Source: Octopus bimaculoides
Lineage: Eukaryota
NCBI RefSeq assembly: GCF_001194135.2
Contig: NC_068990.1
Span: forward strand, 25,091,752 to 25,155,751
DNA: 64,000 bases
Direction: 5' to 3'
Under the pieces are notes generated by a model. That model had not been told where the DNA came from and searched no databases. It saw only the letters and a list, made by a program, of their open reading frames with translations. Shown here piece by piece: positions 28,501-55,920 of this stretch. The position numbers and the translations under genes were made by a program. Position 1 is the first letter of the stretch; the number at the start of each line of letters is the position of its first letter.

Positions 28501-31500
28501 AATTAAGAGAAAACAAACAAAAATCAGCACCAACCTAACAAAGGGTTATTAAATGTTTTTTTGTTTATAATTGGATATCCAGTTCCTCCACAATAACTTG
28601 TAAAACAAAGCTTTCATTGTTAAATAGGAAATAAAAATGAGTGAGAGATATAGAAAAAGTTGTTGGAAGAGGGTTTTACATCTTGTAGCTTCTTCATATT
28701 GGTTCAAGATGTTACAGGATGTTTCAATATAAGTCACATCGAAATTTGTTACCAACACAAAAATCAGCTGTTTTAATGATGGCAAAAAAAAAGACCNNNN
28801 NNNNNNNNNNNNNNNNNNNNNNNNNNNNNNNNNNNNNNNNNNNNNNNNNNNNNNNNNNNNNNNNNNNNNNNNNNNNNNNNNNNNNNNNNNNNNNNNNNNN
28901 NNNNNNNNNNNNNNNNNNNNNNNNNNNNNNNNNNNNNNNNNNNNNNNNNNNNNNNNNNNNNNNNNNNNNNNNNNNNNNNNNNNNNNNNNNNNNNNNNNNN
29001 NNNNNNNNNNNNNNNNNNNNNNNNNNNNTTTAGTTCATTTATTGGAAAGAAAAATCATAAATAAATAAAGAAAGAAAAAGCAAATCTTTCAGGTTTGCAA
29101 ATTTTCTAAGGCTATCTTTTGAAATGAGAAGAGAAAGAAGAAGAAAAAAAGAAATTCTTTGAAATATATTTGTATGTAAAGGATAATAACACAAAGACAA
29201 ATAATTCTGTGGAATTGGTAATTTAAAAAAAAAAAGGAAATGAAAGAAATGTAACAAAAATGAGGATATTTTTCTCTTGAGTTTTTCCCTTCCCCATCAT
29301 TTGTTTCTGATTTAAAGAATGGTTAAATGAATAAAGTAATTTATGTTTGTAAAAAAAAAAAATCACAATGTAAGAACTCCTCAATTGTAAAGAATGCTGA
29401 TTGAAAAATTATGGAACGATTAAATGGAATAATATTTTGTTTTTGGATTTGACACTCCCCAGACACAACAGTAAATGGAATAAGTATTTGTGAAAAAAAC
29501 ATGAGAAGATTGGAAATGATATGAGATATCTGTTTTACATGAACTATGAATAAATAAACATCCAATCACTTAATCTAAACTGAAAGCTAACGAACTAATA
29601 ATCATTATTCCCCCAAATTGTTTTATGAAATCTTTTTTAAAAAAAGAGAAAAAAAAGAAAAAGAAAATACTTGTCCATATTCACTAATAGTATAGTTGCA
29701 AGATATGAATGGTACTGAAGTGTTTAATATGCAAGACTTGACATTTTGATATGAGCAAGATGTAGACATGCTTTTAAAAACTTCCACTCAAAGCACATAT
29801 ATTAACACAGATATCCACCAACGATGGGAATATAATGAATCAACATGCTAGAGGTAGACAGACAGAGACAGAGATTACAAAAAAAAAAAAAAAAAAAATC
29901 ATATATGTATACATATAGAAAGTTTGAGAAACATTAGAACAAATCTGGTAAAGGAAATCTAAGCAGCAATCAGTAAAAATTAAGTCAGTAAACTATAATA
30001 TCGATGCTTTCAAAGCATTAGTAAAACAGTATTCAGACAACTGTGTTGAGGGCAAGTTAAACAAAATGGCCATTGAGAGACTGTTGCCGGAATTCAACTA
30101 ACTGCTCTTGCTTCACAAACCAGGCCCATTGCACCTGTACATAATGTTAGTACAGGAATTTTTCAGTAGGTTAGTTCAGAAACATGAAGCAAAAACCACA
30201 TCATGAAAGCCTTCAATAAGTCCATTCCAAGGAGAACCATACCTTACAGCTAGACTGTTGCCAAAACTGATTCCAAGAATTTGGTCGTGGTTTGACATCT
30301 TTTTTCTCTCTCAGGAATACATTGTTTTCTGTCTTATTTGCAAGAAGGTTAGGTTCCTTATTGCTGCTAATTTGCTTAGAATCTGTTAGTTGTATAGGTT
30401 CAGTTGGTTGAGGGTGGAGTTTGTCAGTAAATGATATTTGGTTAGTTTTATCTGCTGAGAAATCAGGAGAGGACTGAACATCAGATGGAACAACAGTTTC
30501 TAATCTGTTAGATGACACCGGTGACAGAGAGGAAGACAATCCACTTTGAGGCAGACCATCAGGAAGAGACAATTGTATTGCTTCTGTTGTAGCATCATTT
30601 ATTGGTTTCTTAAATTCTGGATTTTCAGCAAATTCTTCTGTATGCAGAATATCTGAAGTTTGTTTGGAAGGTACTGTAGTTTCAAATGATTCCACTGTAT
30701 TCTTGTCTGCATGTGAAGGCAAACCAATCAGAGGAAGTTGTTTATCCTTATTATCTGAGCCAGAAACCATTTCAAGAGGTTTCTGTGGCAGGTTGCTTTC
30801 CATATAGGGTTTAGCAGCATTTTCAGGTGTTACCAAAGTTTGGTTTGAATCAACTGAAAGAATTGGCTCCGTTTCTGACGAGGTTGTTTCTGTGTAGTCT
30901 GCATTATTAGAATCTTTTAATCCTTCTCGTGTGCTGTTGCTAACTATTAATCCTGCAGCTATTGCTTCAATGAAGTCCAGCTTTTTGTGATCTCCTGGAG
31001 TAATATAAGTTCCCTTATGAGGATCGATTATACCTCGATTGATAGCTTCTTTAAGATTTATGATTGAATCCTGATTGAGGTCTCGAATTTCCATACAACT
31101 AGCTGTGATCAAACCATTTCCAATAACAGTAGCGAGATCATTGTGTTTTCCAGAGCAAGGGTCACAGAAAAGCCCAAGCTTTTTATCATAAAGAGCCTGA
31201 TCAACAGCACTGTATAGGGTCAGTCCACTTGGACTAATGATGAAACCTTGGTGAAGGGCTTCAGCCAAACTCATGCACTGCCCTGTCTGTGGGTTTTTAA
31301 ATATACCAGTTTTGATATCAATAAGACCTAAACTAGCAGCTCTTCTTAGAGTAATTGATTGCACAGTATCAGGGTCAATAACTTGAGAATTTGATCGACT
31401 TAGCATTCCAGAAGCAAAAGCTTCTTCTAGTTTCATATTTTCTATCTCAGAATTATTCAAATCAGAATACGTGTTGTTAGTTTTATCACTTGCCGACATA

Positions 31501-34500
31501 TCTGAATTTATAGAATGGCTAAGATCAGCATTTTGAGCCTTTAACCCTTTATCCTCCTTTGAAATCCACCCCTTCTTTTTGGCGTCATAAAGGTTCATAA
31601 TTTCATTAGACACAGGGTGTTTAAATTTACCTTTCTCCAATGATAAAAGGCCAATCGAATTGGCAACAAGGATGTTCATAGTTTCTAGAGTCTGAGGACA
31701 CACAATTTCATCAGCTAAAGGATTTAAAAGTTCTAATTTCAAAGCATTCAGTATTGTCATAGAGTTGCCAGTATTGGGGTCTATTAAAAACCCTGTCTCA
31801 GGTTCATACAAACCTTTGTCAAGATAATCATTCAAAGTTGTTTCAGGGTTAGAACACTTCAAATTCAATGGCAGCATCAGTTGAGAGAGTTCTGGGTTAT
31901 AGAGTAATATTGGACTTTGTAATGGTTGCTCTGTGGCAGACGCTTGGATATTGGAAACATCACTGCTAACTGAAATATTCTGGGGTATGAATTTTGGTAC
32001 TTTAGTCAGCATGATTTTTTCATCAGGTGCTGAAGAATTTTTAATTAAAGACAAACTGCACAATTCTGGCTTCATTTCCTGCAGAATTAATGTACTTTTA
32101 GAATTTGCCCTTTCATCAGGAAGCATTTTCATATCATCAGTCACAACTACTTTATTATCTGGTTCAACAGAACCTTTACTGTACAATAAAATTTCATTAG
32201 AAATGGTTTCTTTCTCAGTTCTCTGACCTCTCAAGATATCATCAGACAAGGACACAGAATCAGTTTTATCAGAATCAGTTCCTATTGATGTTGTACATGG
32301 CAAATTTTCTTGATTCTTTGAAGAACCACAAGGTAGTGTTGTAGACTCACCCTTATTAAATACATTTCTTTGAAGTTCATCCTGCCAAATTTCTGGTTCT
32401 TTTAGGTACTTGAGAGGTTGCATTTTAGACAGAGAGTCTTTGACTATAACTTCTTTAAAAACTGTAAAGAATTCTTGAGTTCTAATGCAAGTATCAGCCC
32501 CTTCTGTGTATTCTTCTATATCATATAAAATCCTTGTTGGAGTCGTGTCTTGGATGGTTTCATGATCTGTTAATATGCTATCCGACACATCTGCACTTTC
32601 TACGTTCTCAGATACAGTTTTTATAGCAGTTGTATTCTGTAAAGTTTGCTCATCTCTAGGAGAACTATCAGACATTCCTATACATTCTACCTTATCAGAA
32701 ACAGTTCTTAAGGCGGTTGAGTCTTGCAGCGTTGGCTGATTCTTTAGTGTATTAACAGACAGTGATGTATATGGTACCTCATTAAATACAGTGTTTTTGG
32801 AAGCCACAGTATCAAAAGATTCCTGCATCTCTAATGAACTATCGAGTGTTGTTATACCTCCTGTTTCTTTACAAGCTGAATCTTGTGTTTGCTTTTGATT
32901 CTTTGGAGCAATATTAGGAAATGCTGTAAAGTCTGCTTTATCAGAAATATTTGGAACAGAATTTGAGATTTGGATCATTTCTTGATCTTTTTGGTAAGTA
33001 TCAAGTAAATCCTTATTAAGTTGTATTCCTTCAGAAAGTTTAGCCTGTTGATTTTCTGGGTTTCTTGGTAAACTATCAGGTAGTCTTGGAGATGCTTCTT
33101 CATTTGATCCAGTTCTTCTGGGAACTGTGACTTGCTGTGATGACTGGTCAAGTACTGTTCTTTTAGACATAGCGTCCTGCAAAGTTTCTTGACTGCCAAC
33201 AGGATTCTTAGGAAGTGCAATAAAATTGGCTTCATTTACTGCAACTCCTTCGGAATGTGGATTTTGAAGCAATTCTTGTACATTAGATGAAGATTTCTCT
33301 AAATCTGGATGGTTTACATCAACTGTGAAAGTAGGATTCAGCAAGGCCTGCTGGGAGTTTGAAATACTTTTTAATGGCGTCACTTCTGCATTATTAACTG
33401 CATTTCCTTTGGAAATGTTTTCTGGTTTAAGTTGTGATTCAGCAAATGTCATAGATTTTGGATTCTTTGACATAGCACTTGCATCTTGCAACGATTCTTT
33501 ACCTTTTGGTAAATTATCATTCAACAATGGAGTTGGCACATTAGAAAGTTTACTTTGCAAAGTTTCTGGAGAATGTAGAGAGCTGTTGTCCAATGATGGG
33601 TTTTGTTCGATAGTAGGTGTATCTTGTATGGTATGAACAAAGTTTGACGAAACACCATTTGATATTGGAAAGAATATTTGAGGTGCAACTTGTGAAGTTT
33701 CTAGACCATTTGGGAAATTATTTGGCATCACACTGTGCACATTGTCAAGTGCCATTCCTTTTGAACTTACATCAGGAAATACATCTTTTGTCTTTTCCAA
33801 TTCATTATTTAATTCTGAAGGTTTTAAATGATCAAATATAATTCCTTTCAACACAGCATCTTGTAAAGTTAAATTGATGCCAGATTGAGTAAGACATCCT
33901 GTTGTTAGATCAAACATGTTGTCCTCAATAATGCTTGACAATAACAAAGGTTGTTTGTTGTCTGCTGAAACAAATGTATGGTTTATATTTATAAAACCTG
34001 AATCAATAGCTTCCTTTAATGTCTGCCTTTTTCCTGTCGAAGTGTTCAACATGCAACTAGAATTGGAATCAAAAAGTTTCATGTTTACTGCTTTTCCCAA
34101 GTCAATTTGTTGGTCAGGAATGGTAAATATAGACCCGGATTTAACAGCTTTTTCCAAAGAAATTCTTGTCTTTTTAGATTTATTTAGCAGTGACATTGTC
34201 TTACTACTAATCACTCCCTTTTCTAAAGCTTCATACAGAGTGAATACAGACCCATTTTCTGGATGTTTAATCAAAGATGTCTGTCCATCAATTAGATTAC
34301 TTGATAAAGAATCAGTTAAATTCTTGTAATCATCTATTCTAGGATCCCAAAACATCTGTCTCTGAGAATCAAATACTCCATATTCATAGGCTGCTTTTAA
34401 ACTGAGTTTAGGTTTCTCTGCATCAATGATATAACAAACTTCTAAAGCTTCTTTATAAGAAAGATGCTGGTTTCCAGGAATGGATAAAGTAAAGTTTTCA

Positions 34501-37500
34501 GGATTTAAAATTCTTTTTTTAACAGCAGTTTTAAAAGGAATGTAACATTTTAAATGAACATCCCATACCAATGGCTCTTTCAAAAATCCCATTTCACTAT
34601 TTTGATGAAGTTGGGGTATATCTATCATTTGTTTACCATTCAAATTATTGCAAGGTAAGATTTTCTGAGTTTTTAGCCCTTCAGCAAGTGTATAGCTTCT
34701 ATTTTGAGAAATAAATTTACCAGAAGAGTCTAAAACATTTGCCTCTATGGCTTGCAGAATGGATAGTGGGCTGGGGTGATCAGGGAACATAAAACGATCC
34801 TTATCGGATAAGACATGAGACTCCACTGCTTCCTTCAATGGAATGAAAGCTTGTGTATAGATGTTGTAAACTGAATTAGTGTCCTCCTGGTAGAATCCCA
34901 GCTCAATAGCCTCATTCAGACTAATGTTATTTGAGATATCCGATATAAGATTATTACTGAGGGCTGTAGAAAGATCAACACAAGATCCCTCAGAATTACA
35001 AAGAGTCCCTTTTACACTGTCAAACCAGCCTTGATCAATGGCTTGGTTTAGTGGTGAAAAAGATTCGCTGTTGGATTTTTTCACTAATGTTAGCTTTGAA
35101 TCTATCAACCCAATATCTACAGCATCTTGAATATCAATTTGTTTTCCTGATATTGGATCAATAACATTCTTTAAATCCTGATCAAAAAAGCCAGATTGAA
35201 TAGCAGTGACAAGACCAACTGCAGATTGGCCTGTGGCAAGTCTGATGATGCCAGCATCAACAGCTTCTTTTAAATCAAGATCTTTACCATTAGACTTAAT
35301 CTTAACATCTTCAACATTTAAAATTCCCTTTTGAACAGCTTCGTCAATAGTCAGAAAATGATCTTCATGTTTAATTGTAATTTGATCAATCATTAGTAAT
35401 CCACTGCTCACAGCTTCCTGCAAATTTTCAATCTTTCCTGATTTTGGATTCATAAATTTACAGGATTCTGGATTATAGATACCAAGTTTAACAGCTTCTA
35501 TAGGAGTAGTTTCTGATGTACCTTTATCTTGAAGAATTAAACCTTTGCGTATTGCTTCTTCTAGAGGGTAACATTTTGAAGGTGTAATGTAGGAACCATC
35601 AGAAGCACTTATAATCCCCTGTAGAATTCCACCACTCACAGTTAAAAGAGTTTGAGAATTTACATCTCGAACAGTGATAGAATTTTTGTCTAGAAGTCCA
35701 AATTCTAAAGCATTCATAAACGAACTTGGGAGTGAGGAAAAGGGATCAACAAATCTCTTTTTACAAGGATCATAAATTCCTTCTTCAAAAGCTTCCTGAA
35801 GTGTAAGGCCAGGCTGTGAGGAAATATCAAGAATCAATCCTTTATCTATGGCCTCAATCAAAGAGTATTCAGTCCCTCGATAGGATAACTCTGACCTTTC
35901 AGCATTAAACAAGTTATTTTCTAGAGCAGAACTGAAGCTACAAGCTTCACCAGCATCATTCCGCACTCGTACCAGATCAGTATCAATCAATCCAATATTG
36001 ATTGCATCAGAAAATGAAATTTCTTCATTAGTATTTGGATTTAGAAACAGATTAGTATCTTCATTGAAAAGTTCATCAAACATTTCAGTGAGAGATAATT
36101 TTAATGGCGAACGGCATCTCACAATCAACCCTTTCTCAAGAGCAAAGTTCAAAGCAATAGCTTGACTTTGAGCATCCATCATTTTACCAGAATCAACATC
36201 AATAAGCCGTTTGGAAATGGCTTCGCTAAGAATCATCACATCCCAACTTACAGGGTCTCTAACGAGAGATTCCATTCTTATAAATCCATCATCTATAGCA
36301 GTTGATAAAGGAACAGATTCATTTGATGGGTAAGTCACAGTATTTTTTAATGGGTTGTACAGGCCAGTAAGGATAGCCTCATCTAAAGTCACTGAATCGT
36401 TAGCATTTTCTGCTAAGAGAGGGGTACATAAAGACAGACTTTCTCTTCTCAGAGTGGAGACTGATGTTCTTCTTTTGGAAGAAAGAGTTGGCATTGAAGA
36501 TCGTCTTCGGAGAGATGGCGATGTAGTAATTTTATCAGAGTTAAGCTGAATATTATCAGTTGTGAAATTTGAATTCAAAATTACATCAGATGGATTGTGT
36601 TGGAGTTGTTCATGATGTCGGGGTTGTTCATGAAGCAAAATTTTAAGCTTACGGGAGATTAAGAATTCTTTGTTTACAGCTTCAGTGATAGTTAGTTGCC
36701 TATTCTTATTCAGATCAAGATAAAAACAGCCAACAGTATTTGAATGGAGAATATTTTCACAAAAAGCTTCTCTTATTGAAACGATTTGATTGGATTTTGT
36801 ATTTACAACTTCTTCAGAATATAGGCTCAAATATTGAAAACTTATCATCTCATCCAGAGTATACCATTTTCCTGTAGTGGTTTCCTTAAACAAATAATTG
36901 GAACTATCAAAATTTCCTTCATGTACCAGATCAGCAATAGAAGTTTCAATTTTGTCAACTATGAAACCTTTATGCAGTGCTTCATTCCAGTCCAGCCATT
37001 TTTTCAATGAAGAATTCTGAATCTGCCCAGTCTGAATATCAAACAGATGTCTGTCGTTAGCAGTGGCTAGATTAATAAATTCTTGGTTTTTCACATCTAA
37101 CATTCTGGTTGCTGCTGTAACAGATCCTGTCTTGATAAGGTCAAATAAACCAGGACCAATTTTATTACGAAACTGGAAAAATTCTGATTCCTTTATTTCA
37201 GGGTGTTCCAAACAAATAATTCTTTCTTTGAAAGCTGATGCCAGAGAATATTGCAAATTACTGTTGCTAACGATTAAGTTTCCATTATCGATGTGAACCT
37301 GTCCTGATAAAATAGCTTGCTCTAAACTAATCGAAGTTGAAGGATTCAAATGAAGAGTCACACTAGGTCCATAGAGTAAACCAGATTCTAAACTTTGGTG
37401 AAGGTTGAGTAATTCCATATTAGATGGGTGAGCAAATTTACAACTAAGAGGATCCCAGAATCCTTTAATAAAGTTCTTGCAATAGCAGTCGAGATTGGAC

Positions 37501-40500
37501 ACATACGGACAATCACCAGATACAATGGGAGGGGATGTAATATATTGATCGTTCAGATTTGATTGGGAAAAGCTATATGGATGCTCATCAATATCCTCAC
37601 TGCTATCTGTAGTGGAGGAATTGGAACTATGAAAGCCATTTGGAATGGAATGGTGAAAACCTGGCAAACTTTGTTCTTTTGTCACAACTGTTGAAGATTT
37701 CTCACAAAGACCTTGACCTTTTGGATTGGGAGGCATATTCTTACCCTGAAAATTAGAATCTATATCTCAACAAAGAGTCATTAAATCCATACCTACTCTA
37801 AATTAAATAAAAACAGAGGCAAATAAATCAATAAATATATAATACAAATATGTACAGATGAATTTTGTACTTTGTTTTGTTAATATAGTCTTAGAATTGT
37901 TTTTTATGGTGATGGTAAGTCAAAATATCTTAATATAGGATCAAAAAAAAAAAAAAAAAATAAGGAAGAAACAATGAAAATGATGCTCTCCAAAAGGATA
38001 ATAAATTTTTTAAATTCATAAACAACATGAAAGAGAAACTCAGAGTTAATGAACATGGAATGAAATCCACCCCAGCACTTTTTAGTACACGGAATGAAGT
38101 ATTATGCTTCCCCCACCCTACTATCCTACAAGAAGTACATGATATGAACTTTCATCATCATCATTAGCAGCACTTATAAAAAGCACATGGAATGAGGTAT
38201 TACCTTGCCTTATACCCACCACTCTTTAAAAAACATGAAATTAATCATTACTCTCCATCTAGCTTTTAAAAATGCACTAACAATGATAGGTCAACTCACG
38301 CACCAGTGAAAACATTAAAAAATACAAAAATAAAGTACTATTCTTCCATTTTTACAAATGTATACAAGACAAGGCATAACCTCACCACACATCTTCCCAA
38401 ATGAACACAGGAAAATTAAATATGACAAACATCTGACCTATTTTCATATTGGTTTCAATTTTTGGCACAAGGTCAGTAATTTCAGGGGAGGGGATAAGTT
38501 GATTGTATCAACCCCAGTGCTCAACTGGTACTTATTTATTGACCCCCACCAAAAGGATGAAAGGCAAAACTGACCCTGGCAGAATTTGAACTCAGAACAT
38601 AAAGATGACAAAATACCACAAAGCATTTTGCCTAGCAGGCTAACAATTCTGCCAACTCACAGCTTTTGGAGCTATTTTAATATTGAAAATCATCTGTGTT
38701 CAACATTGGATATCTTCACAAGTATGAAGTATTAATTTTCTAACATCAGCACAAATCTTCCCATGTGAGGGTTGGGTGAGCCAATCAGCTTGACTCCAGT
38801 TCACAGTACAAAGTTTTGATCTGCGATTGCAGTAAACCTGCTCATACACTGAAAACAGATGCAGATGAAGCAGCATCTTATAAAGTCTGGTTACTATTAG
38901 ACTCACTATCATCATTTCAACATCCAGAGTTTTCCATGCTCAAATGTGTCATATGGAATTTGTTGAGGAAGATTTTCCATGGCCAGATGTCCTTTCTGTT
39001 GCCAACCCTCACCTGTTTCTAAGTAAGGTAATATTTCCCCATAACCTGACATGTCTTGAAAAATTGGAAATGAAGGATACCACTTGCATGATGGTGACAC
39101 TTGCTTTTCACAATCACATGATGTCAAGGAAAGGAGACAATAACACATACAAATATGACAGGCTTCTTTCGGTTTCCACCTGCCAAACCCACAAAAAGCT
39201 TTGATTGGGCTATAACAGAAGACACCAACTCAAGGTGGAAACTTCTTATCACACAGGCAGGCCTGCACCTAGACTAGTTTAAAATAATTTAATAAAGAAT
39301 TAATATCCTAAAACAGGACATTATAAAAAAAGACTGTTGCAATTAGTTAAACAAATAACCATTTCTAATTTAGGTACCATGCCAGTAACTGCGAAGGGAG
39401 TGGGGTTAATTGATGACATTCATCCAGGAAATGACCGGTACTTTATCTAATCAACTCTGAAGTTGACCTCAGCAGGATTTGAACTCAGAATGTAAACAGA
39501 ATGAATGCTGCAAAGCAATGTTTTTATCTGACACTCCAATGATGTTACCAACTCATCACCTTTGTTAACCAAATAATAAAACTGAAGTTTACAGGTCCAG
39601 GAAAATGTGTGTATATATTCAATGCTAAGAGACAAGTTTATATTATTCTTTCTAATTTTGGCACAATGCCAGCAATTTCTTGAAGGGAAAGAGAAGTCAG
39701 TTACGTTGATTCCAGTGATCAATTGTAATTTATTTTATTAACCCTAAATGGATGAAAGGCAAAACCAACCTTGGTGGCATTTGAACTTGGAACATAAAGA
39801 GCTGGAAGAATTTTCTAGCGTGTTAACAATTCTACCAGTTTTCTGCCTTGCATTTATTTATAATACTGATTTCAAAATTTGGAACAAGGCAAAATTTCGG
39901 GGAGAGACTCTAAGGTCAATAAAATTGACCTCAGTACTCAACTGGTATTATATCGACTCCAAAGGGATGAAAGGCAAAGGTGACCTCGGCAGAAAGGAAA
40001 AAAAAAAAATCACACTATAATATTAAAATGACACTAGTTAAATTTTAAAAATTTGAAGAGTGATGTATGTGAAAACAAAAGCAAATATGCAAATTATGAA
40101 ATGTGTCAATAAGAAATGACAGAAGACGTTTTCTTTCTTAGGGTGAACAGAACAAGATTAAAATCACAATGGTAACAAGTTTCAATGAAATATAAAACTG
40201 TTAGAATACATAAATGAAATATCAATGAGTTCACTAATAACTGCAACAAGGTGGCTAAGCCGTTACCTACCTGACAAAATCGAGTTATCTCATAACAGCA
40301 CCAGGTGAAAATAGATCTGACCATAATTTTGACAGCTGCATCTTTAATTATCATAATTATTGCTGTTTGTTTTTGCTAAACAAATTCAAATGTACAATTT
40401 CCAAGTGGTATGTCCAACTCAGAAAAGCCATTAATAAGAAACGTGTGTCTTCATTAGAAAGGTTTTCTTTTATGAAGCTTCTCAAGACATTTTACAGACA

Positions 40501-43500: not shown

Positions 43501-46500
43501 AATTTTCTGTGAAACGGCTTCTTCTAGTGTAAGTTCTTCTCCTGTAGTGGTGTTCAGAACAGCAGTCACATTTACATGGCGAGCTGTACCTTTTTGAATG
43601 TCACATTTCTTAGGTTTCTTCATATCTGCAACTAAGTTTTTCTCAATAGCTTCGGATAAGTGCATGGTTTCTCCTGTAGCTGTATTCTTGAACAGATTAT
43701 TCTTTGGATCTAAAATACCAGCATTTATGGCTTCTTCTGAAGTTAAGTTTTTGCCAGTTTTAACGTCTTTTACAATGGTTGAAGAACTCAAAGATTTTGC
43801 AGTTGGAACATCTGGTGAGACTGGAGTAACTTTCACTAAGCCTTTTGTCACAGCCTGCTGGATTGGCAGACGTTCTCCAGTAATTTGATCGATCATTTCT
43901 CCCCTCTGAGGGTCAAACAGTCCAGCTTTCACAGCTTTATCAAGGGGCAAAGTTTTACCAGAACGAGTATCCACAACATCTGTGATTTGGATAGATTCTT
44001 GTTTTTCAGGTCTAACCACAAAATTTCCTGCTGGTTCGACAGTCATTACCAAATCTTTCTTAATAGCTTCTGACATTGGATATATATCACCAGTGGTTTT
44101 GTCTCTGTAACTGCTTAAGTTTTTATCAACAATGTTTTGTCCTATAGCTTCTGTTACAGTTAGTTGACGTCCAGTTTGAGGATCAACAATAAATTTAATA
44201 GGAGGCAGAACATCAGTGGTATCTTGTTCACTTTTACAATAGCCCTTCTTTACTGCTTCAGATAGAGAAATCTTCACTCCATTTTCATCAGTATAAGTAC
44301 CACTTTCCAAACATATAAGGTCCTTTTTACTAGCATCTTCAATGGACAAAAAGTCTTTCAGTTTAGGGTCATAAACAGATTGAATTTTCAATGTTTTTTC
44401 AGAGCCAGGGTATGTCAAATCAGCAGGAGAACCCTCTGCTGAGCCTTTCACCAAACCCTTTTTGTATGCTTCAGCCAATGCCATATGTTCTCCAGTGGAT
44501 TTGTTTAAAAGAACACCATCAGAAACATCAACCAAACCTTTCTCTACAGCATCACTGATAGGAAGAACTGTTTGTGTGACAGGGTCAGTCACATGACTTA
44601 TTGTAATTGATTGTCTTTTTGTGACGGTCACATCTTTCTTAGGATCCCTTGGTTGAGAGCTAGAAAACTGATCATCTGTTTCTTCTGTAGAGATGTAGCC
44701 TTTACTGAGAGCTTCATTTATGCTCATGCGCTCACCCGTCTTTTGGTTTGTGAATGTTTCTTTTTGTATATTTAATATGTTCTTCTTTACTGCTTCAGTA
44801 AGCGGCATCTTTTCTCCTGTATTTGGGTCTAACACAGAAGAAACATGGACATCTTTCTGCTCAGAGAATGAAACTGCAGCAGTGTAGCCCTCTTTGGATT
44901 TCTCCTCTCTTGATACAAGATTGTCAAGTGTGTTGCCATGGACAAAGCCAGAACTAAGGGCATTGACCAGAGAGAAAGTTTGTCCAGTGACAGGATTGTG
45001 GTAACTTCCATTTTCAACATTAACAATATCCTTGTCAATCGCCGTCTTTAGATCAATATAATTACCAGTTGAAGGATCAAGTACTTCATCAATAGACAAT
45101 TTATCAATCATCTTGATTGTTATTTTACTTGATGCACGATTATCTACCGGTGTTTCTTGTAAATCACCATTATTAATTAAATCATGCAATGTCTTTTTGG
45201 TTTTGTTACTGGGATCAACAAAATGTCCAGTAGCATCGATTAAATTTTGGTCAAATGCTTCTTGTAATGTGTAGGTACGACCAGCAATATTTATAGACCC
45301 TGATGTTGGGAAAATATAACCAGAGTCAATAGCTTCTTTAAGTGTGATGGAATTTCCTGAGAAAGGTATTTTGTACATTCCTGTGTTAGAATTCAAGAAC
45401 CCACTTGATATTGCCTCCATCAATGTCATTGCATCTTCAGAGACAGGTGACACTTGTTTAATTTTGACAACTTCAACCACATTAGGTTCAACAATACTGC
45501 CCTTCGTTGCTTCAACCGTAACTGGAATAGCAGGAGATTTTGTTTTGCTGGTAGATTTTCCTATTAATTCCTTTCCTTTATCAAAAAGCATTTTCCCAGC
45601 AATAACTGGAGCCCCAGCAATACCAGCCACAGCAATAAGTCCAACTTTGGCAGCATCCTTCAAGTCAAATGCTTTATTTCCCTCAATGAATTTACCACTG
45701 GTTTTATCAATCTTTCCTTCTTTCCAACCATCTTGGAGAGTTAACATTTTCTCACTCTTTAAGTCATAGATAGCAGTCTGGTCGTTGATGAAACCTCGAT
45801 CAACTGCTTCTTGTAGAGTCATAGTTTGTCCTGACATGGAGTCTGTGAACTTCCCAGTGTTAGGATCAAACAGACCAGCATCAATGGCTGTAATTAGGCT
45901 CATTTTGGAGGAAGGTTCTGGTGAGGTTTCAACATCAGCGCTAGGGTCAATAAGTTGTTCTCTGATAGCATCTAAAATTGCCATCCGAGATCCGGTCTTA
46001 GGATCTGTGTATTTATTTTCAGCTAAATCAATAAAACCTTGGTTAAGAGCTTCTGCAAAAGAAAGTCTCTTGGCCAACTCATCAGTGTTTTTAGTGCCCT
46101 TCTGCCTTTTTACAACAGCTTCAGGGGTGATGTCAGCTGGGCCTTGCTCTTTGAACTGTTCCCCAGTTGACAATGCCATTGGCTGATGGACAAGTGTTGA
46201 TTCTGGAGTAGTCATTGGATAAGTTTTCATTGAGACATTAGAAACACTGTCTTTCGTTACCTTTTCATATTTATGAAGCTCTTTTGGCTCCACCACACTG
46301 TCCTTATCAGAACCAATAAATCCATATTGAACAGCAGTAGAAAGTGTCATTGTATCTTTGGTTGTTGGGTGAGTAAAAGTCCCATCCTGTTCGTTAACCA
46401 AACCAAGATTTATGGCCTCATCTAAAGTATATTTTTGCTCATTAAATAGATTTTCAGAGAATTCTTTGCTTGATTCTGCAGAATCTTTTATGTCCATTCC

Positions 46501-49500
46501 TGTAGATAATATCTCATCAGGAATCAAACCCTCCAGAAGAGCTTCATGCAAAGGTATCCGCTCACCAGTCACAGTATGGATAAGTTCACCTGTGTCAGGA
46601 TTAAGAACTTTTCCATGCATTGCCAACCTCACAGATAAAACAGTACCACTTTTGGGATCAATTATAACAGATCTATCACAGTCGATCACTCCATGGTCAA
46701 CAGCCTCCCGAATGGACATTGGTTGACCATTCATTGGGTTGATAATTTTACCCAATTCATTTATGAAATGGCTACCATGAACAGCATCATTTAAGGTCAT
46801 TGGTAACCTAGTTGTGAAGGAAGCTGATTGCTTCACATGTGTTCCAGACTGAGATATGGTACAACTTTCTCTCACATTAACTGTCTGGTGGAATTCCTTA
46901 GTATTAGTTGTCAGAAGTTCTGGCTCAGATCGTTTGGTCTTTTTCGATTGTAAGGCACTAGCGATGATGTCAGTGGGCAATTTTTCCCCAGAAATTACAG
47001 CTAATTTCTGTGCAGTTGCTATATCAAGAAGTCCTTTATGTAAAGCTTCAGTTATTGTTAGTGGTTGATTAGTTTTGATATCGGTTATTCTGCCAGACTG
47101 CCAGTTAATGTTGATGTTCTTGGAAAATGGAATTTGTTGGGGAGTACGCTGCTCAGCCAGATTTTCTATCAAATCACTATTGAGCAGACCTTTCTGTACA
47201 GCTTCAGCAACAGTCATCTGTTTCCCGCTTGAAGAATCAAATACCAAACCATTTTCCCAATCAATGCTAACATTTGAACCATCTTTGAGAACCACATTTG
47301 GATAAGAAATTACTTGGGATGAATCCCTGTCAACAGGTTGGATTTGATTACTTGAAGCTGGGAGAGATGATATGCTAATAGTTTCACTACTAACAGTTGA
47401 TGTGCTACTCATAAAGACTGACTGACTTACACTCACTCCTTGTCCGGCAGGGTGGGTGGGTCTTATCTGGTCATCAGGTTTAGCATATATTATTGTTGTA
47501 GTTGGTTTATCATAAGAATCCCCTTGAGAAGTTGGTTTATCATAAGAATCCCCTTGAGAAGTTGGTTTATCTGTTCCTATTATTTCTTTAGAATAATCAG
47601 GGTATTTATCTTTCTGTTGCATATCATTTGTAGCAGAAGGTGACTGGAAACTTTGTGGTACTTTCGGTGAAGATGGTTGTTGACTTTTCTGTAATATGTC
47701 AGTTGCAGAAACAGGTGGCTGACCTCTGTCAGGCACATCAGTTGTAGAAGGTAACTGATCACTCTCTGGTAGAACACCTCTCTGTAGTACATCAGTTGTT
47801 GACAGTGGGTGTCCTCTCTGTGGCATATCAGTTGATGGTAGTTGACCTCTTTGTGGGCTATCAACTGTTGGTAGGGCTTGACCACTATGTAGTGCATCAG
47901 TTGTCAATGGTGGCTGACCTCTCTGTGAGACATCAGCCGCTGATGGTGTTTGATCTCTTTGTGAGATATCAGCTGTTAGTGGAGCTTGACCTCTCTGTAA
48001 TGCATCAGTTGCCGATGGTGGCTGACCTCTCTGTGGGACATCAGCTGCTGATGGCATCTGACCTCTTTGTGGGACATCAGCTGTTGGTGGGGCTTGACCT
48101 CTCTGTAATGCATCAGTTGCTGATGGTATTTGACCTCTTTGTGGGACATCAGCTGCTGATGGCATTTGACCTCTTTGTGGGACATCAGCTGTTGGTGGGG
48201 CTTGAGNNNNNNNNNNNNNNNNNNNNNNNNNNNNNNNNNNNNNNNNNNNNNNNNNNNNNNNNNNNNNNNNNNNNNNNNNNNNNNNNNNNNNNNNNNNNNN
48301 NNNNNNNNNNNNNNNNNNNNNNNNNNNNNNNNNNNNNNNNNNNNNNNNNNNNNNNNNNNNNCCGATGGTGGCTGACCTCTCTGTGGGACATCAGCTGCTG
48401 ATGGCATCTGACCTCTTTGCGGGACATCAGCTGTTGGTGGGGCTTGACCTCTCTGTAATGCATCAGTTGCTGATGGTATTTGACCTCTTTGTGGGACATC
48501 AGCTGCTGATGGCATTTGACCTCTTTGTGGGACATCAGCTGTTGGTGGGGCTTGAGCTCTCTGTAATTCATCAGTTGTCGATGGTGGCTGACCTCTCTGT
48601 GGGACATCAGCTGCTGATGGCATTTGACCTCTTTGTGGGACATCAGCTGCTAGTGGGGCTTGACCTCTCCGTAATGCATCAGCTGTTGATGGTGGCTGAC
48701 CTCTCTGTGAGACATCAGCTGCTGATGGTATTTGATCTCTTAGTGGGACATCAGCTGTTGGCGGGGCTTGACCTCTCTGTAATGCATCAGTTGTCAACGG
48801 TGGCTGACTTCTCTGTGGGACATCAGCTGCTGATGGTGTTTGACCTCTTTGTGAGACATCAGCTGTTGGTGGGGCTTGACCTCTCTGTAGTACATCAGTT
48901 GTCGATGGTGTTTGACCTCTCTGAGGCACATCGGTTGTTGATGGTAGTTGGTGGCCTTTCTGTAGCACATCAGTTGTTGACGGTGGCTGGCCTCTCTGTG
49001 GTACATCACCTGCTGATGGTGTTTGACTTCTCTGTGGCACATCAGCTGTCGATGGTGGCTGGCCTCTCTGTGGCACATCAGTTGTTGGCTGATCTCGCTG
49101 TAGCATCTCAGATGTTGATGAAGGTATCTGCTCTCTCTTTGATCTATCAGATTGTTGATCAGGGCCCGATGATGGTAATTGACTTTTAGATTGCGATCTG
49201 GTAGATGTCTTTTCTTGAGCATCTTTAGCAGACTTTTCATTAATTTTATTCTTAACAGCATCGTAAATAGCTTTACCAGCAAGAGCAGTACCTATAATTG
49301 GTGCACCTACAGTTGCTAGCAGACCAAGTTTCACAGCTTCTTTGGCACTTAAAGTTTTATTGCTTGAAGAATCAATCACCTCCCCTGTCTGTTTGTTGAC
49401 AAGATTTCTTTGAATTGCAACAGATAAGGGGACAGTTTCTCCTCTTTCACTGTCATAAACTTCAAACTTTGACCCACTTGGAAGATCTTCTGTGATCACT

Positions 49501-52500
49501 GATTTAACTGGAACAGTTTGTTTTGTTTTCGGATCATATAATCCCCCAGTTTCTGGATCGTACATGCTTTCAACAATCTTATTTTCAATAGCCTTTGTCA
49601 GAGGAAGTTTACATAAATGTTTAGTGTCTGTTACTTCTGCTGTCCGCTTATCTACTAATCCTCGTTTTAAGGCTGAGTCAAAAGGGAGTCTCTCAGAAGT
49701 TGAAAGATTTTTTACTGTTGTAAAGTCAGTAGATATAATATTATCCCTGATGGCTTCTTCAAGGGTGAAAGTATGGCCTAGTTTATCAGAAAATAGTTTA
49801 GTCTCAGGATTAAACATTCCAAGAGAAACAGCATCAATTATATTCACTGGTTTCAAATCTTGAGCACTGCTAAGACCTTGTAAATACTCAAGAGTTTCAA
49901 TATCATTTACTTTACCTGTTTGAGGATCGAGTTTATTCATTTTAAAGCAGTCTTCCAGTGTAAGGGTCTGTTTTCCTTGAACATCAAGGATAGCAACTTT
50001 GTTGGGATCTATCACATTCTGATCAATAGCTTCCAAAAGAGTGATTGGTTTTTCCAATGAAGGGAGATTTACTAAACCAGTTTGTGGATCAATAAACCCT
50101 AATTTGATTCCTTCAGCATACGAGAACCCAGGTGTAGGTTCTTCAGGTTGTCTCTCTGCTGAAAATGGAGTTGAAAATTTGTCATCTCTCTTCTTTGTTA
50201 TATCGACTTCAATGTTAATAGCTTCTGTAGCAATTGACTCATTCTCAAAAGGACTAGATGTAGTTAGTTCTGATTTCTCTAACTTCATATCCACTTTTGT
50301 TGGAGACCTTGGAGAAAGGATTTCAGTGTTTGATTCCCCAAAATCTTCTTCAAACTTGTTCTCATCTTCAGTGATGTTTAGTTGCGAGATGTCAGTTGTT
50401 TTGGATAATTTTATAAAACCTTGATTCAGTGCATCATTAAGACTCAACCGTTCATGTGAACGGGAATCAAAGAATACTCCATTGTCAACATCAATTATGT
50501 TTTCTTTTATAGCTTTTGATAAAGACACCTCTGCTCCAGTTCTAGGATCAATAACTGATGTTACTTTATTGAATGGAAATTCAGGTGACTCAGCCATGAT
50601 GGAACTTTTCAATATATCTTCTTCCCTTTGCTGTGAAGTGACTTCTCCATGAATAAGACCCTTTTCCAGTGCTGTTGTGATGGACATGTTCTCTCCAGTT
50701 GATGGATTTGTATAGAGGCCTTCGTGTAGATTCAGCACCCCCCTTTCAACAGCTTTGTCATAGGAGACAAGATCCATGGTGAGTGGATCAACAACACTAG
50801 TAATACTTAATGTGACAGTTTGTGAAGACACATCTTCAACCATTGTACTTTCAAAGGCTTCTTCATCTTCAGTTATATGGATACTACTTATTTCAGATCT
50901 ATTGTTAACAGGAGCTCTTGTTTCTTCAGTAAATAGTAATCCTTTTGGAATAGCATCTTCAAGAGACATCTCTTCTTTTGTTAATGGGTTTATGTACAAT
51001 CCTTTAGAATAATTTAATATACCATCTTTGATAGCTTCATTTACTGATATCTTCTTACCAGTTCTAGGGTCCACTACAGCAGAGACAGTCATGGTGGTTT
51101 GTTTTGTTGTTATGATCCGATTTCCTTCTCGTTCAACATTTGGTGTAACAAATGACAATTCAGCATCAATGAGTTTCTTTTCAATTGCCTCAGTAATCAT
51201 GATTTTTTCCAAGGTCAGAGGATTGACATAAAGACCACGGGATTCATCAATGATTCCTTCGTGAATTGCTTCTGCTACAGTCATAATTTCATTTGTGACT
51301 GGGTGGACCACACTCTTTAAGTTGAATGTCTTTGTTTCCCGGATCCAATCTGGTTTAATGGACTTTGGCACAGTACTTAAGTCTTCAGCAATAACAAGAC
51401 CTGCTTCAATTGCTTGACTAATGGGGATTCGACATTCTTTATTATCTTTAATTCCTACATATTGTCCTCTGTCTTGATCAAGGATTCCTAATTGTATTGC
51501 TTGGCTAACAGATAATTTCCCTTTGGTGACAGGGTGCAGGACGCCAGTTATTGAAAAAGCGACAGTTTCTTTAATGGGTTCTTCAGCCACTGTAGGTGGC
51601 TCCACTGTATATTCTGCAACTATGTAACCTTTTCTGATTGCTTCATTTATAGGAATGTTATCACCTGTTGTGGGATCAGAAAATAAACCTGAACCTAAAT
51701 CAATGAGACCTTTATTGATGGCTTCATCTACGTCAATAACTTTTTTAGATTTAGGGTCCACCACAGATTTGATTGACATGTTACGAACTTCAGAGATGAC
51801 GGCTTTGACAGGTTTAGTCAAAGCTATTTGAGTGAAGGTATAGTTCTGAGCTGATTTACTAATAAAAGCAGATTCCACAATGGAATCATTAGATTTCAGA
51901 GATTCTTGTGGAGTTCGTATCGTACTTTCTGTTGCACTAGAAATCGCAGTTTTCTGTTTCTTAGGTGTTCTCTCCATTGTTTCATCTAATTCATCAATGC
52001 TGCTTTTGATAAACTGTCCGGGGACATTACTGGAAGGCCACTCTGATGACAAACGAAGTAATTTTCGGTAGATGGCATCCTCAATAGTCATAATTTCACC
52101 TGTATTAGGGTCTTTAAATGTGCCAGCTTGCTCTGCAAGAAGACCTCTGGAAATTGCTTCAGAGATTGTGATAGCAGTGACAGGTGGTTTTACTTGATCA
52201 GACGACACACAAGTTGTAACAGTTGTAGAAATAATTAATGGACTTATTAATTCTAAAATCATCTGAGCCTTTTCTGGTGAGAGAATATTTTCAGTAACTG
52301 CATTCTGTAAGGGTACCATATTACCAGATTTGTCTTGAATATTTCCAGACTGAATATCAATCATACCAATGTTTATGGCTTCAATCACTGACAGTTTTCT
52401 GCCAGATGGATCTTCAAGTAATTTCTTGGTCAAATTCGAGGCTATTTCTTCATCAAGGAAACCATGTTTGGCAGCATTCATTATTGAAAGCTTTCTTCCA

Positions 52501-54266
52501 GTTTGTGAGTCAACAAACTCACCTTGTGTTGTTAAAACTCCGTTCATTAGAGCTTCATAGACAGACAGCAAAGATCCAGTGTTACTGTCTAGAATAGTCT
52601 TAGGTGGGAATGACACACACTCATTGGCAATTTTAATATGACCTTCCTTCAAAGCCTCTTGTATAGAAAGTGGGTGTTCAGCATCTGGTATTAAAACTTG
52701 CCCTTTGTCATTTAAGATTCCTTTCTGAAGAGCATCTTTGATGGAAAATATGTCATTAGTCTTTGTAATTATCAAACTTTTAGAATCAGTATTGATAATT
52801 CCCTGGTTGACAGCGTTAGCAAAGGAAATAGCTTGGTTACTGACAGCCTCAAAGATCAAACCATCTTCATTGAGGTTTCCTTTTTGAATGACATCTGATA
52901 AAGACATAGGTTGAACAAGTAATTGTTTACGTTGTGCTTCAGATAAGCTCATCCATTTCCCAGAGCTGGTTTCCAGGAACTGTCCTGATTGTGGGTGAAT
53001 GATTCCCTTGGACACAGCTTCAGTCAAAGAAATCAGAGGAGTTGCTCTCGCTGCACGGATTTCCTTCAGCGAAGGATTTATATAACCTTTCTCAACTGCC
53101 TCAAGTATTGTCATTTCTTGACCAGAAATTGGATCACACACTTTGCTCTTCAGTTCATCAAACATACCCTTCTGAAGAATTTCTGCCAAACCGAGAGCTT
53201 TGTCTGCTCCTGGGAAATTTTGAAGACCAAAATGAGCTTGTGATTGAGTAATTTCACTGACAGTGATGTCGGGGCTAATACCAAGCAAACTTGGTAGCTT
53301 TTGAGAAATTAAACCTTGTCCATATGCATCTTTTACAGGAATCATTTCTCCAGTCAAAGGGTTTGATACTTGGCACTTTAGTGGATCCAAAAGACCTAAC
53401 TTGACAGCATCTATTAGTGTGTACTGTTGGTTTGAATTAGGATCAACAAGGCCACAGGGTTGGTGCAGTTGCTGGAATAAAGTTGAATCTAAGTAACCTT
53501 TATAGACTGCTTCTGACAAACTTATTTTGGCTTTTGTTAGAGGATCAACATACGTAGCAGACCTCGTGTCAATTATACCTTGTTGGAATGCTTCATATAA
53601 ACTGACTTTCATCTGGCTCTGTGGGTTTACAACTAAACTCTCCAAAATACTACCATGTGTTGTCTCAAGTTTTGTTTTGGCAACGCTTATAACGTTTTGG
53701 ACATTTTTCACAGGAATCTGAGAAATTTGCATTGCATCACCTTCAACATGTACATCACCATTCAATGGTGAAGGTTCTGGCATTTCAGAAATATTTGATA
53801 AATGAGTATCTTTAGCATCTCGACTAGGTCTGTGCATTTGTTTTATGGAGGTTTTAGTTGTCGAGACAAATGTGCTACTTGTGTATGTTGCTGAAGGCTG
53901 ATTGGATGCTATGGTAGTTGAAGAGGAGGAGGAAGAGCTCATGTAGCTAGCAGGAATACTGCCAAGACTATCAAATTTATCAAGTTGCTGAAAGAATCCT
54001 TGCATGTCTTCATCAACAAGCATTGAAGAACGTTTAGCTAGTTCAGCACGGAATGTTCGAAGCAGTGGTATATTCTCATCAATCACCATTTGAAACTAAA
54101 ACAAGACAAAACCAAAATGTAAATAAGGGAAATAAAAGAAGAAAAAGAGTTTTTTTTTTAATTCAACGATTCCTCCCCTCTTCCCTAAAAAAAACAAAAC
54201 AACAAAAAAGTGTTTGAGAAGCAATACACATGCATTCACATGTTCACTAACAGCATATATACATAC

Positions 54267-54302
<36 letters not shown>

Positions 54303-55920
54303 ATATATATATATGTATCTGCTGCATGTACATTGTACATATATTACACATATATTCAATGTTATTGCTTTAAATCATTTTAGTACTAACTTTTCCATGC
54401 TTGTATGGGTTAGAAAGAGTTTATTGAGGCAGATTTTCTACAGCCAGATGCCCTCTTAGTTGCCAAACTTAACCTGTTTCCAAGCAAGGAAATATTTTCT
54501 CATGACCAGACATGATTTTGCAGAATGTTGATAATGAACGACATTGTTTGTAAGACAGTAGCACTCGTGTACTATCATGCAATGTCAAGACAAGGAGACA
54601 CAAACATACATGATGGGCTTCTTTCAGTTTCCTTCTACTAAATCCACTCACAAGGCATTGGTCTACTAAGGACTTCAGTACAAGCCACTTGCCCAAGGTT
54701 GCCATGCAGTGGGACTAAACCTGAAACCATGTGGCTGGGAAGCAAATACTAGCATAGCTCGAGTGTATGCCGCCTGGGGTGGCCCTTCCGTTTTCCACCC
54801 CTGGACCCCACAAAAACAATTATTGCCTACAGCAGACCCAAAAGTGGTGCCCCATTAAAAGTGTCACTCGGGGTGGACTGCCCCTACCGCCCCTTCCCCT
54901 AGCTACGCTAGTGGAAGCAAACTTACCAAACCACACAAGCTACACCTGTACATATGTTCACATGCTTACCATGATGATGAGGGTTCCAGATGATCCGATT
55001 AACAGAACATCCTGCTCAAGAAATTAACAGGCTGAGTACTCCACAGACACGTGTACCCTTAACATAGTTCTCTTATAGGGAAATTCAGTGCGAAACAGAA
55101 TGTGACAAGGCTGACCCTTTGAATTACGAGTACAACTCATTTTTGCCAGCTGAGTGGACTGGAGCAATGTGAAATAAAGTTTCTTGCTCAAAGACACAAT
55201 GTGCTGCCAGGATTTGAACAAATGACCTTACAATCATCAGCCAAATACACAAACCACTAAGCCACATGCCTTCAATACACATATAAACACTGGAAATATA
55301 TTTACATGTTCACACACAGCACATATATTACACATATATTCTCATATATCCACAGCAAATACATCTTTTTACATGTTTACACACACAAATATTTTAAAAA
55401 TAACTTAAAAGTAAGATTCACTTACTTTCATATCAACATTAGCTTCAGACAAAATCGAAGTGATGTCTTTCAGCCGGTTATTAGTCCATTGAACCATATT
55501 CATATAGGTAGTATTGAGCAAGTCCAGTTCTTCTCGGATAGTTTCAGCTCCATTTGGCTGGTCAGTACTTTGTTGTACATTGGTCTGTGATGAAAGCAGA
55601 CTGTCTGCATATTGCTTCATTTTCTTGTCATAAATCTACAAAAAAGTGGCAAAGAGGAAAACTAAATCAGTCCCAGTGAAAATAGGAGACACAAATTAAG
55701 TGTAGAACAGATGTGGTGTTGTTCAAATCAGTCAAAGAGAGACTTTTGTGAAACTAAAAAGACTTTGTGGTATTTTTAGGTTATGAAAAAGACTTCATAT
55801 AACTAGAGAGAGAGTGGTAGAGAGAGAAAGAAAGGAGCAACTAGAGGGAGGGGGATTCCATAGAATGGGAGACAAAGAGACTTTGTAGAACTAGAAAGAC
55901 AAACTTGGTAAAGAGAGAGA

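Follow-up and report, generated by a model that had tools for sequence, protein, structure and literature searches.

We analyzed a 64-kb window (the whole 64,000-nt stretch of Octopus bimaculoides contig NC_068990.1 under study), in which two giant exons, designated A and B, lie on the minus strand as long open frames rich in Pfam Plectin repeats. The original prediction, made from the letters of this stretch alone, had presented them as a possible modular size switch in one spectraplakin. Judged by its sequence, the A/B region codes for the internal plakin-repeat region (PRR) found in spectraplakins of the MACF1/dystonin/Shot family, with the plakin domain ending before it (exon U0) and the spectrin rod beginning after it (exon D1 onward). 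We made this assignment because Pfam Plectin (PF00681) scored 350 bits in the 5′ part of A, 394 bits in its 3′ part, and 120 bits in B; because the same gene continues directly 3′ of the plakin repeats with spectrin repeats (Pfam Spectrin matches of 84 and 55 bits in D1–D4 and further exons); and because U0, the last exon of the plakin domain and the only part of that domain in the window, encodes 28 aa that are 86% identical to an abalone MACF1-like protein. The predicted gene identity was therefore borne out. In tblastn, the downstream exons were collinear with residues 1273–2688 of the abalone MACF1-like protein. Those parts of a spectraplakin that are expected further out, the N-terminal calponin-homology actin-binding domain and the C-terminal EF hands and GAR (Gas2-related) domain, fall beyond the ends of the window. 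The locus is ordinary spectraplakin biology, unusually large. The reading that we favor, with a probability of roughly 0.6, is that the PRR consists of two real, conserved giant exons that represent two old subdomains and that exon U, exon A, and exon B form an optional module between U0 and D1. The comparison set consisted of assembly contigs (L001–L011) and reading frames or protein models (P numbers); a literature search on spectraplakin in octopus returned no match.

Exon A (54095..41956, minus strand) comprises two open frames, 54095..48362 (1,911 codons) and 48204..41956 (2,083 codons to the donor), on either side of an assembly gap:

48362..54095, minus strand: exon A, 5′ part; 1,911 codons + 1 nt; conserved N-terminus PLLRTFRAELAKRSSMLVDEDMQ, then ~34–37 plakin-type repeats
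41956..48206, minus strand: exon A, 3′ part; 2 nt + 2,083 codons; tandem-spacer end, TTIIYAKP motif, ~39–46 repeats, donor ACG/gtaagt
48207..48361, no strand: assembly gap; 155 N, estimated length
47776..49088, minus strand: coding tandem array holding the gap; 36/108-nt units (TRF), 12-aa units

As had been claimed, exon A starts and ends in phase 0 at consensus splice sites, the acceptor being tttag/TTTCAA at 54095 and the donor ACG/gtaagt at 41956 (slashes mark splice boundaries), and both sites are kept in phase in L001, a contig from a related cephalopod-like genome. A second possible phase-0 donor is present at window positions 42000–42005 (CAG/GTAATT in gene orientation, LQ/VIGE), 15 codons 5′ of the exon A donor, and is nucleotide-conserved in L001.

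The halves of exon A on either side of the gap do not share a frame (coordinate mod 3 = 2 vs 0), and at the nominal 155 N the exon would be 12,140 nt long, which is not a multiple of 3. The unit coded by the array that holds the gap, 12 aa long (..PSAADVPQRGQ..), is no plectin motif. In a register test, gap lengths of 21, 129, 237, and 345 nt gave a 96% match to the previous period, compared with 24% for 155 nt. Only missing lengths of 21+108k nt hold the register of the array, and since all of these are multiples of 3, the true join is in frame. The gap is benign, with a true missing length inferred as 21+108k nt, which gives exon A a length of 12,006+108k nt and 4,002+36k codons (4,038 codons at k=1, the value nearest to the estimated gap length). 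The predicted frame compatibility of exon A, which the nominal 155 N would break, is thus restored by the array register, and any gene model of exon A will be broken by the gap in this coding array unless the gap is resized. A single continuous frame crosses the gap-equivalent point in L001, P0013, P0019, and P0025, the last three of which are collinear with both halves of exon A. The spacer of L001 at the equivalent site (about 14900–15750) is a different 12-aa repeat of the AAKGKEPSSVE type and is read straight through; on these comparisons, the tandem array is a fast-evolving spacer. The spacer that follows the first of two hydrophobic landmarks (see below) is a species-specific tandem 12-mer, of the PSAADVPQRGQ type in the window; in L002-type species it is short, lacks repeats, and precedes an intron. 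At 13955–13965 of L001, a +1 frame shift breaks the exon A orthologue where the window is open, which is probably an assembly indel in L001.

Exon B, its parts, and the adjoining introns are arranged as follows:

30243..37745, minus strand: exon B; 7,503 nt = 2,501 codons, phase 0-0
33816..36428, minus strand: N-terminal repeat block of exon B, aa 440–1310; ~98-aa super-repeat of beta-hairpin + short-helix units of ~25 aa
31866..33815, minus strand: central insert of exon B, aa 1311–1960; non-repeat, low-complexity
30891..31865, minus strand: C-terminal repeat block of exon B, aa 1961–2285; the most conserved part of B, 41–74% identity to orthologues
30143..30242, minus strand: first 100 nt of the intron 3′ of exon B; 99% identical to a close relative and still alignable in distant L004
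37746..41955, minus strand: intron between A and B, 4.2 kb; holds an interspersed-repeat copy

The open frame of 7503 nt and its phase 0 at both ends were found as predicted, with the acceptor ttttcag/GGT at 37745 and the donor AAG/gtatgg at 30243. The L003 contig of a close relative is collinear from 38200 to 29506 at 91.5% nucleotide identity and keeps the frame, acceptor, and donor of exon B. Amino acid identity in the exon was 88%, and dN/dS was 0.33 overall, with values of 0.22 for aa 1–1310, 0.62 for the 650-aa center, 0.12 for the C-terminal block, and 0.55 for the tail. Judged by these substitution ratios, exon B is under purifying selection. Orthologues were present in L004, L007, L010, and L011, with the donor AAG/GTA kept in L004, L010, and L011. 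The 650-aa center is largely absent from the L004 orthologue, in which P0010 jumps from B aa 1312 to 1871; constraint on this center is relaxed, yet every indel relative to the close relative is in frame. The 100-nt intron flanks of exon B were 97% and 99% identical to the relative, compared with 92% for the exon and 74–90% for distal intron (one to two species pairs).

By hand, about 140 plectin-type motifs had been counted in A and B; this number is too high, and the profile-based estimate is 100–125. Pfam Plectin at E≤1 marked 15+19+6 = 40 stretches in the three open frames. A self-trained profile HMM seeded from A returned 96 (E≤0.01) to 121 (E≤10) repeats and one seeded from B returned 76 to 114, against ~1 in shuffled sequences. 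Exon B units recur every ~25 aa in the structure model described below, and the profiles overlook some of them. Two further statements of the original prediction held: the repeats of B are more divergent than those of A, as seen from the Pfam Plectin scores (120 bits vs 350 and 394), and the two exons differ in linkers and architecture, with 27-aa doublets and linkers in A (in the 5′ part the repeats are mostly doublets, 27 aa apart) and a ~98-aa super-repeat in B. Exon A also carries two hydrophobic landmarks:

49260..49325, minus strand: hydrophobic landmark 1, GLLATVGAPIIGTALAGKAIYD; kept in mollusc-type orthologues, P0013, and Drosophila Shot
45571..45642, minus strand: hydrophobic landmark 2, GLIAVAGIAGAPVIAGKMLFDKGK

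The landmark motif, a hydrophobic stretch with small residues (DAAKxGLLAxVGAPxxAG), has exactly two copies in exon A and none in exon B, and it lies at residues 1025 and 2057 of P0030. It could be a membrane-associating or packing segment; no published description of this motif was found.

An AlphaFold2 model of exon B aa 528–925, built from a four-sequence alignment (pLDDT 79.6, pTM 0.56), contained 15–16 units of ~25 aa, each formed by a beta-hairpin and a six-residue helix. When the PDB was searched with this model by Foldseek, the only significant match was the plakin-repeat region of desmoplakin (5dzz, E 5.7e-05); the next matches were other desmoplakin and periplakin entries with non-significant E values of 0.012 to 1.2, and all matches had a TM score of ~0.1. 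The rmsd of the desmoplakin match was ~25 Å, and the desmoplakin domains are matched locally only. A sequence search of the PDB gave one weak plectin match for A and none for B. On the model, the motif of exon B is plakin-like, and it departs from the canonical plakin repeat domain, in which 38-aa repeats of a hairpin plus two helices form a compact 4.5-repeat globule.

The original prediction held that two such cassettes were a feature of this lineage and proposed a check for one versus two exons in other molluscs. We found that the order U-A-B recurs in L010 and L011, each of which has a U homologue, then a single exon A orthologue (3,662 and 3,470 aa, respectively; 36–39% identical to that of the window), and then, after 1.1 kb or 0.6 kb, a B-type frame that is 31–35% identical to exon B in the N-terminal block and 41% in the C-terminal block. 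L005 has two adjacent giant frames, an A orthologue of 3,970 aa and, ~145 nt beyond it, a frame of 7,223 aa whose period of ~100 aa is of the B type. In the group of L002 and P0003–P0008, an intron interrupts exon A behind the TTIVYAKP motif. The U-A-B layout is thus present in at least two further invertebrate assemblies, and probably in three, and the lineage-specific claim does not stand. Among the best matches listed in the exhaustive search, ~25 representatives of 50%-identity clusters had frames of >3,000 aa, and some were annotated full-length proteins. That B is a cephalopod-specific duplicate of A was considered and rejected, since L010 and L011 have B orthologues downstream of A. An abundance of plectin-repeat modules has already been noted in the spectraplakins of protostomes, among them molluscs (PMC9145010). 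Giant, optional plakin-repeat regions are a known feature of spectraplakins, and the two-exon layout of the locus is common to other invertebrates. The comparison points to an old division of one PRR into the subdomains A and B rather than to a lineage-specific duplication of cassettes.

Two copies of the landmark motif are likewise present in D. kikkawai Shot isoform X12 (XP_070139727.1) and in P0012, P0014, and P0015, single-exon frames of arthropods that align collinearly with Shot; further arthropod and invertebrate orthologues carry the motif as well. The segment before landmark 1 in Shot and in these frames matches exon A best. The segment after landmark 2 fits the N-terminal block of B best (225–231 vs 177–215 bits for P0012/P0014; 177 vs 144 bits for Shot) and has a 99-aa period in P0012 and P0015 that is weaker in P0014 and weak in Shot. 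A and B thus appear weakly collinear with the N- and C-terminal parts, respectively, of the single plakin-repeat exon of Shot. On the simplest reading, A and B would be the halves of an old bipartite repeat region that occupies one exon in arthropods and two or three in mollusc-type genomes; the A-B intron would then be common to other mollusc-type genomes and absent in arthropods, where one exon carries both parts.

The exons that neighbor the giant pair are the following:

59969..60052, minus strand: exon U0; 84 nt, phase 0-0, AIYNALGERRHQIEAMNRYGGQYIREAK; last plakin-domain exon found in the window; donor AAG/gtaagc
55426..55635, minus strand: exon U; 210 nt, phase 0-0; donor AAA/gtaagt at 55426
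25378..25524, minus strand: exon D1; 147 nt, phase 0-0, GRLPDSYDRLLQ...; acceptor ctacag/GGT at 25524; first exon after the repeats
23650–23495, minus strand: exon D2; 156 nt, phase 0-0, spectrin repeats
22699–22523, minus strand: exon D3; 177 nt, phase 0-0, spectrin repeats
about 21877–21794, minus strand: exon D3b; 84 nt, SFSNDIIAHQADVRFMSMAVQKYIEEAK, phase 0-0; found only via alignment of the abalone protein
21276–19966, minus strand: exon D4; 1,311 nt, phase 0-0, spectrin repeats

Exons D2–D4 span 19966..23650 on the minus strand. The donor at 55426 and the acceptor at 25524, which had been named as the flanks of the giant exons, are both present and in phase 0. Exon U0, further upstream, had not been listed in the original prediction. 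All four splice outcomes derived from them keep the frame, as predicted, since B is 7,503 nt and A 12,006+108k nt. All 7 of the 7 neighboring exons (U0, U, D1, D2, D3, D3b, and D4) are likewise phase 0-0, and frame compatibility therefore says nothing about cassette use; as a cassette signature, this argument was not upheld. Copies of an interspersed repeat were observed in inverted orientation at 54373–54699, 38959–39042, 19525–19901, 16930–17012, and 18598–18675, within introns that precede exon A, separate A from B, or follow D4. Inverted intronic repeat pairs can influence splicing or back-splicing.

In every spectraplakin that has been studied, the internal repeat region is spliced in, and PRR-less isoforms are annotated in abalone, insects (P0036), and vertebrates. 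The Haliotis isoforms X11/X15 read ...GGQYIREAK/GRLADSY..., that is, the U0 homologue is joined directly to D1 without U or repeats. Homologues of exon U were found just upstream of exon A in L001, L002, L010, and L011, and none was found in P0018, the abalone isoform without repeats. Because the abalone isoform omits U as well as the repeats, exon U may belong to the optional module; its donor and phase were as predicted, and its supposed constitutive status is in doubt. Junctions homologous to that of D1 occur in P0018 and in P0034, a spliced 531-aa gene model from a species related to that of L011, in which the end of an A-type exon is joined to D1. From its homologues, the PRR would be an optional module, and U, A, and B would most likely enter the transcript as one block, joined to the U0 donor (59969) on one side and to the D1 acceptor (25524) on the other. 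Inclusion would add ~6,600 residues of beta-hairpin/short-helix repeats, modeled as a non-compact array, and the outcome would be a giant isoform alongside a PRR-less isoform. Skipping of B alone is possible, and on this analysis a size switch remains a reasonable hypothesis.

Searches for spliced products gave the following. A query of U plus D1–D4, used in a homology search for spliced transcripts, returned one genomic D4 frame. A word-indexed protein search with a chimeric junction query gave 8 matches and overlooked the 88%-identical exon B orthologue, probably because low-complexity words crowded the candidates. P0081 and P0113, high-identity matches to the junction chimera, were rejected as spliced transcripts because they are genomic frames that read into introns. 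For the locus of the abalone isoform, no gene record with exactly that product was found; such records keep the longest product only, and a longer isoform may exist.

Several observations weigh against the favored reading. The abalone and P0034 junctions are gene models from other species, and in P0034 the 105 residues directly preceding D1 are of low complexity and not assignable to A or B. In word-indexed and exhaustive homology searches, the cephalopod matches were genomic reading frames only. The intron flanks of exon A showed no conservation at the distance of L001, and the argument from conserved flanks thus applies to B only. The collinearity of B with the C-terminal third of the Shot exon consists of 20–24% identity, modest score margins, and a shared periodicity, and the landmark segments of B have clear 1:1 orthologues in mollusc-type sequences only.

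The alternatives concern either the exons themselves or the way in which they are spliced. It is very unlikely that exon A is an assembly artefact, with two exons or unrelated pieces joined across the gap: although the nominal gap length leaves the halves out of frame and an intron splits A just past the TTIVYAKP motif in L002-type molluscs, both gap edges lie in one tandem array whose register restores the frame, the window frame is open across the position of the L002 intron, and A is one exon each in L001, P0013, P0019, and P0025. That exon B is a decaying duplicate, a pseudo-exon, or part of a separate gene was already disfavored and has almost no probability left. Such a view would account for its low Pfam score (120 bits) and the 650-aa low-complexity center, but the 7.5-kb frame is open in two species with in-frame indels only, dN/dS is 0.12–0.22 in the repeat blocks, the splice sites are conserved, and orthologues occupy the same place after exon A in L010 and L011. 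Exon B, or A and B together, might also serve as an alternative 3′ end and yield a short isoform that ends in plakin repeats, in the manner of C. elegans VAB-10A or vertebrate BPAG1e, where the worm plakin-repeat exon encodes an alternative C-terminus. Read-through past the B donor stops after 9–12 codons in three cephalopod-like sequences, with a partly conserved peptide (VWFSLEWTY, VWFSLEWTC, and VGLALEWSSYGV, each followed by a stop). Nucleotide conservation, however, runs ~100 nt past the stop codon and is thus not explained by coding, the first AATAAA/ATTAAA signal lies 515 nt downstream, and the donor AAG/GTA is conserved in four species; we consider this use of the exon improbable.

With regard to splicing, A and B could be independently regulated cassettes that give four in-frame classes (+0, +2,501, ~+4,040, or ~+6,540 aa), possibly tissue-specific, as the original prediction envisaged. 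We regard this as possible, though doubtful. Each exon has phase 0 at both ends; P0034, in which an A-type end is joined to D1, belongs to a lineage whose relative L011 carries a B exon 0.6 kb after A; and the introns beside exon B are more conserved than the exon, the donor-side flank being kept even in distant L004. Conservation that extends beyond an exon into its flanks is a common mark of regulated exons. However, the frame symmetry carries no information when 7/7 neighboring exons share it, a product with B only (55426>37745) is without support anywhere, and the P0034 gene model may be imperfect. There is no indication of a mutually exclusive use of A and B, which had also been proposed, for the two exons differ in length and architecture. 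Conversely, A and B might be constitutive here, so that the gene always makes the giant protein. This would agree with the purifying selection on both exons and with the finding that no skipping junction was observed in cephalopods, for which the matches were genomic reading frames only, but it sits poorly with the PRR-less isoforms annotated in abalone, insects (P0036), and vertebrates and with the conserved intron flanks around B, and it is improbable.

A complementarity scan of 150 nt of intron beside eight splice sites identified one pair of 16-nt arms that bracket the whole U+A+B module, next to the pair of splice sites that the PRR-less isoform of abalone joins:

59895..59910, minus strand: upstream arm, perfect 16-nt complementarity, UUAGCCCUGGAUCAGU in RNA; 58 nt past the U0 donor
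25638..25653, minus strand: downstream arm, 16-nt complementarity, ACUGAUCCAGGGCUAA in RNA; 113 nt before the D1 acceptor

The pair folds as a 16-bp helix (z = -5.7), and the 16-mer arms were found at these two places of the window only, even with two mismatches allowed. The D1-side arm is invariant in a close relative (L008/L009); for the upstream arm, the U0 exon of L001 and L002 was not found within the fetched flanks. The chance of a 16-mer falling in two of the eight segments was ~0.005 when the 20 non-low-complexity inverted 16-mers were counted and ~0.06 when all 242 runs were, and the other complementarities between intron segments near splice sites were low-complexity 10-mers only. 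The 16-nt complementarity is suggestive. A long-range RNA duplex might bring together the U0 donor and the D1 acceptor and loop out the 34-kb U+A+B region, which, with B separately skippable, would yield the linker protein in at least three sizes, with a possible length of more than 10,000 residues; this scheme is speculative, and we consider it rather unlikely.

Known systems bear out the precedent given in the original prediction, a single exon with far fewer repeats. The PRR of Drosophila Shot is one alternatively spliced giant exon of 10,497 nt with 33 to ~40 repeats (Roper & Brown 2003, PMC2173965). It shares with the present locus repeats made of a hairpin and a first helix with a weak second helix, the lack of grouping into 4.5-repeat domains, and the same two hydrophobic landmarks with a B-like part after the second. 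It differs in having one exon, compared with two here that total ~19.5 kb and carry ~100–125 repeats, and in that its short isoforms are spliced from a donor inside the exon, close to its start. The first 1.5 kb of exon A contains no GTRAGW site. Mammalian MACF1b and dystonin differ in having ~20 (MACF1) or 9–11 (dystonin) repeats in recognizable plakin repeat domains of the A/B/C type. In C. elegans VAB-10A and vertebrate BPAG1e, plakin repeats also lie in large exons of the spectraplakin locus, but there the repeats form an alternative C-terminus, whereas both exons here have conserved donors leading to the rod. The closest named full-length relatives found, the Haliotis MACF1-like isoforms X11/X15 (XP_046365486.2 and XP_071119797.1), are 40–86% identical in U0 and D1–D4 and lack plakin repeats and exon U. 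The unannotated invertebrate frames (L005, L010, L011, L002, and others) share the order U, A, B and the phase-0 boundaries, with A-type frames of 3,470–3,970 aa and second frames of 2,200 to 7,223 aa; they differ in their A-B intron (0.15–1.1 kb, namely ~1.1 kb in L010, 0.6 kb in L011, and 0.15 kb in L005, vs 4.2 kb here), in their spacers and inserts, and, in one group, in an extra intron in A.

Spectraplakins link actin, microtubules, and, via plakin repeats, intermediate filaments or junctions, and the role of the internal repeat region is poorly understood even in flies and mice. Arthropods are without cytoplasmic intermediate filaments; the animal of this locus, unlike insects, should have them. 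A cephalopod-like genome keeps ~6,500 residues of plakin repeats under selection, divided into two conserved PRR subdomains that are traceable, weakly, to Drosophila Shot, and the exon boundary between them would allow their separate use. A concrete set of junctions is now defined for an animal that is expected to have cytoplasmic intermediate filaments.

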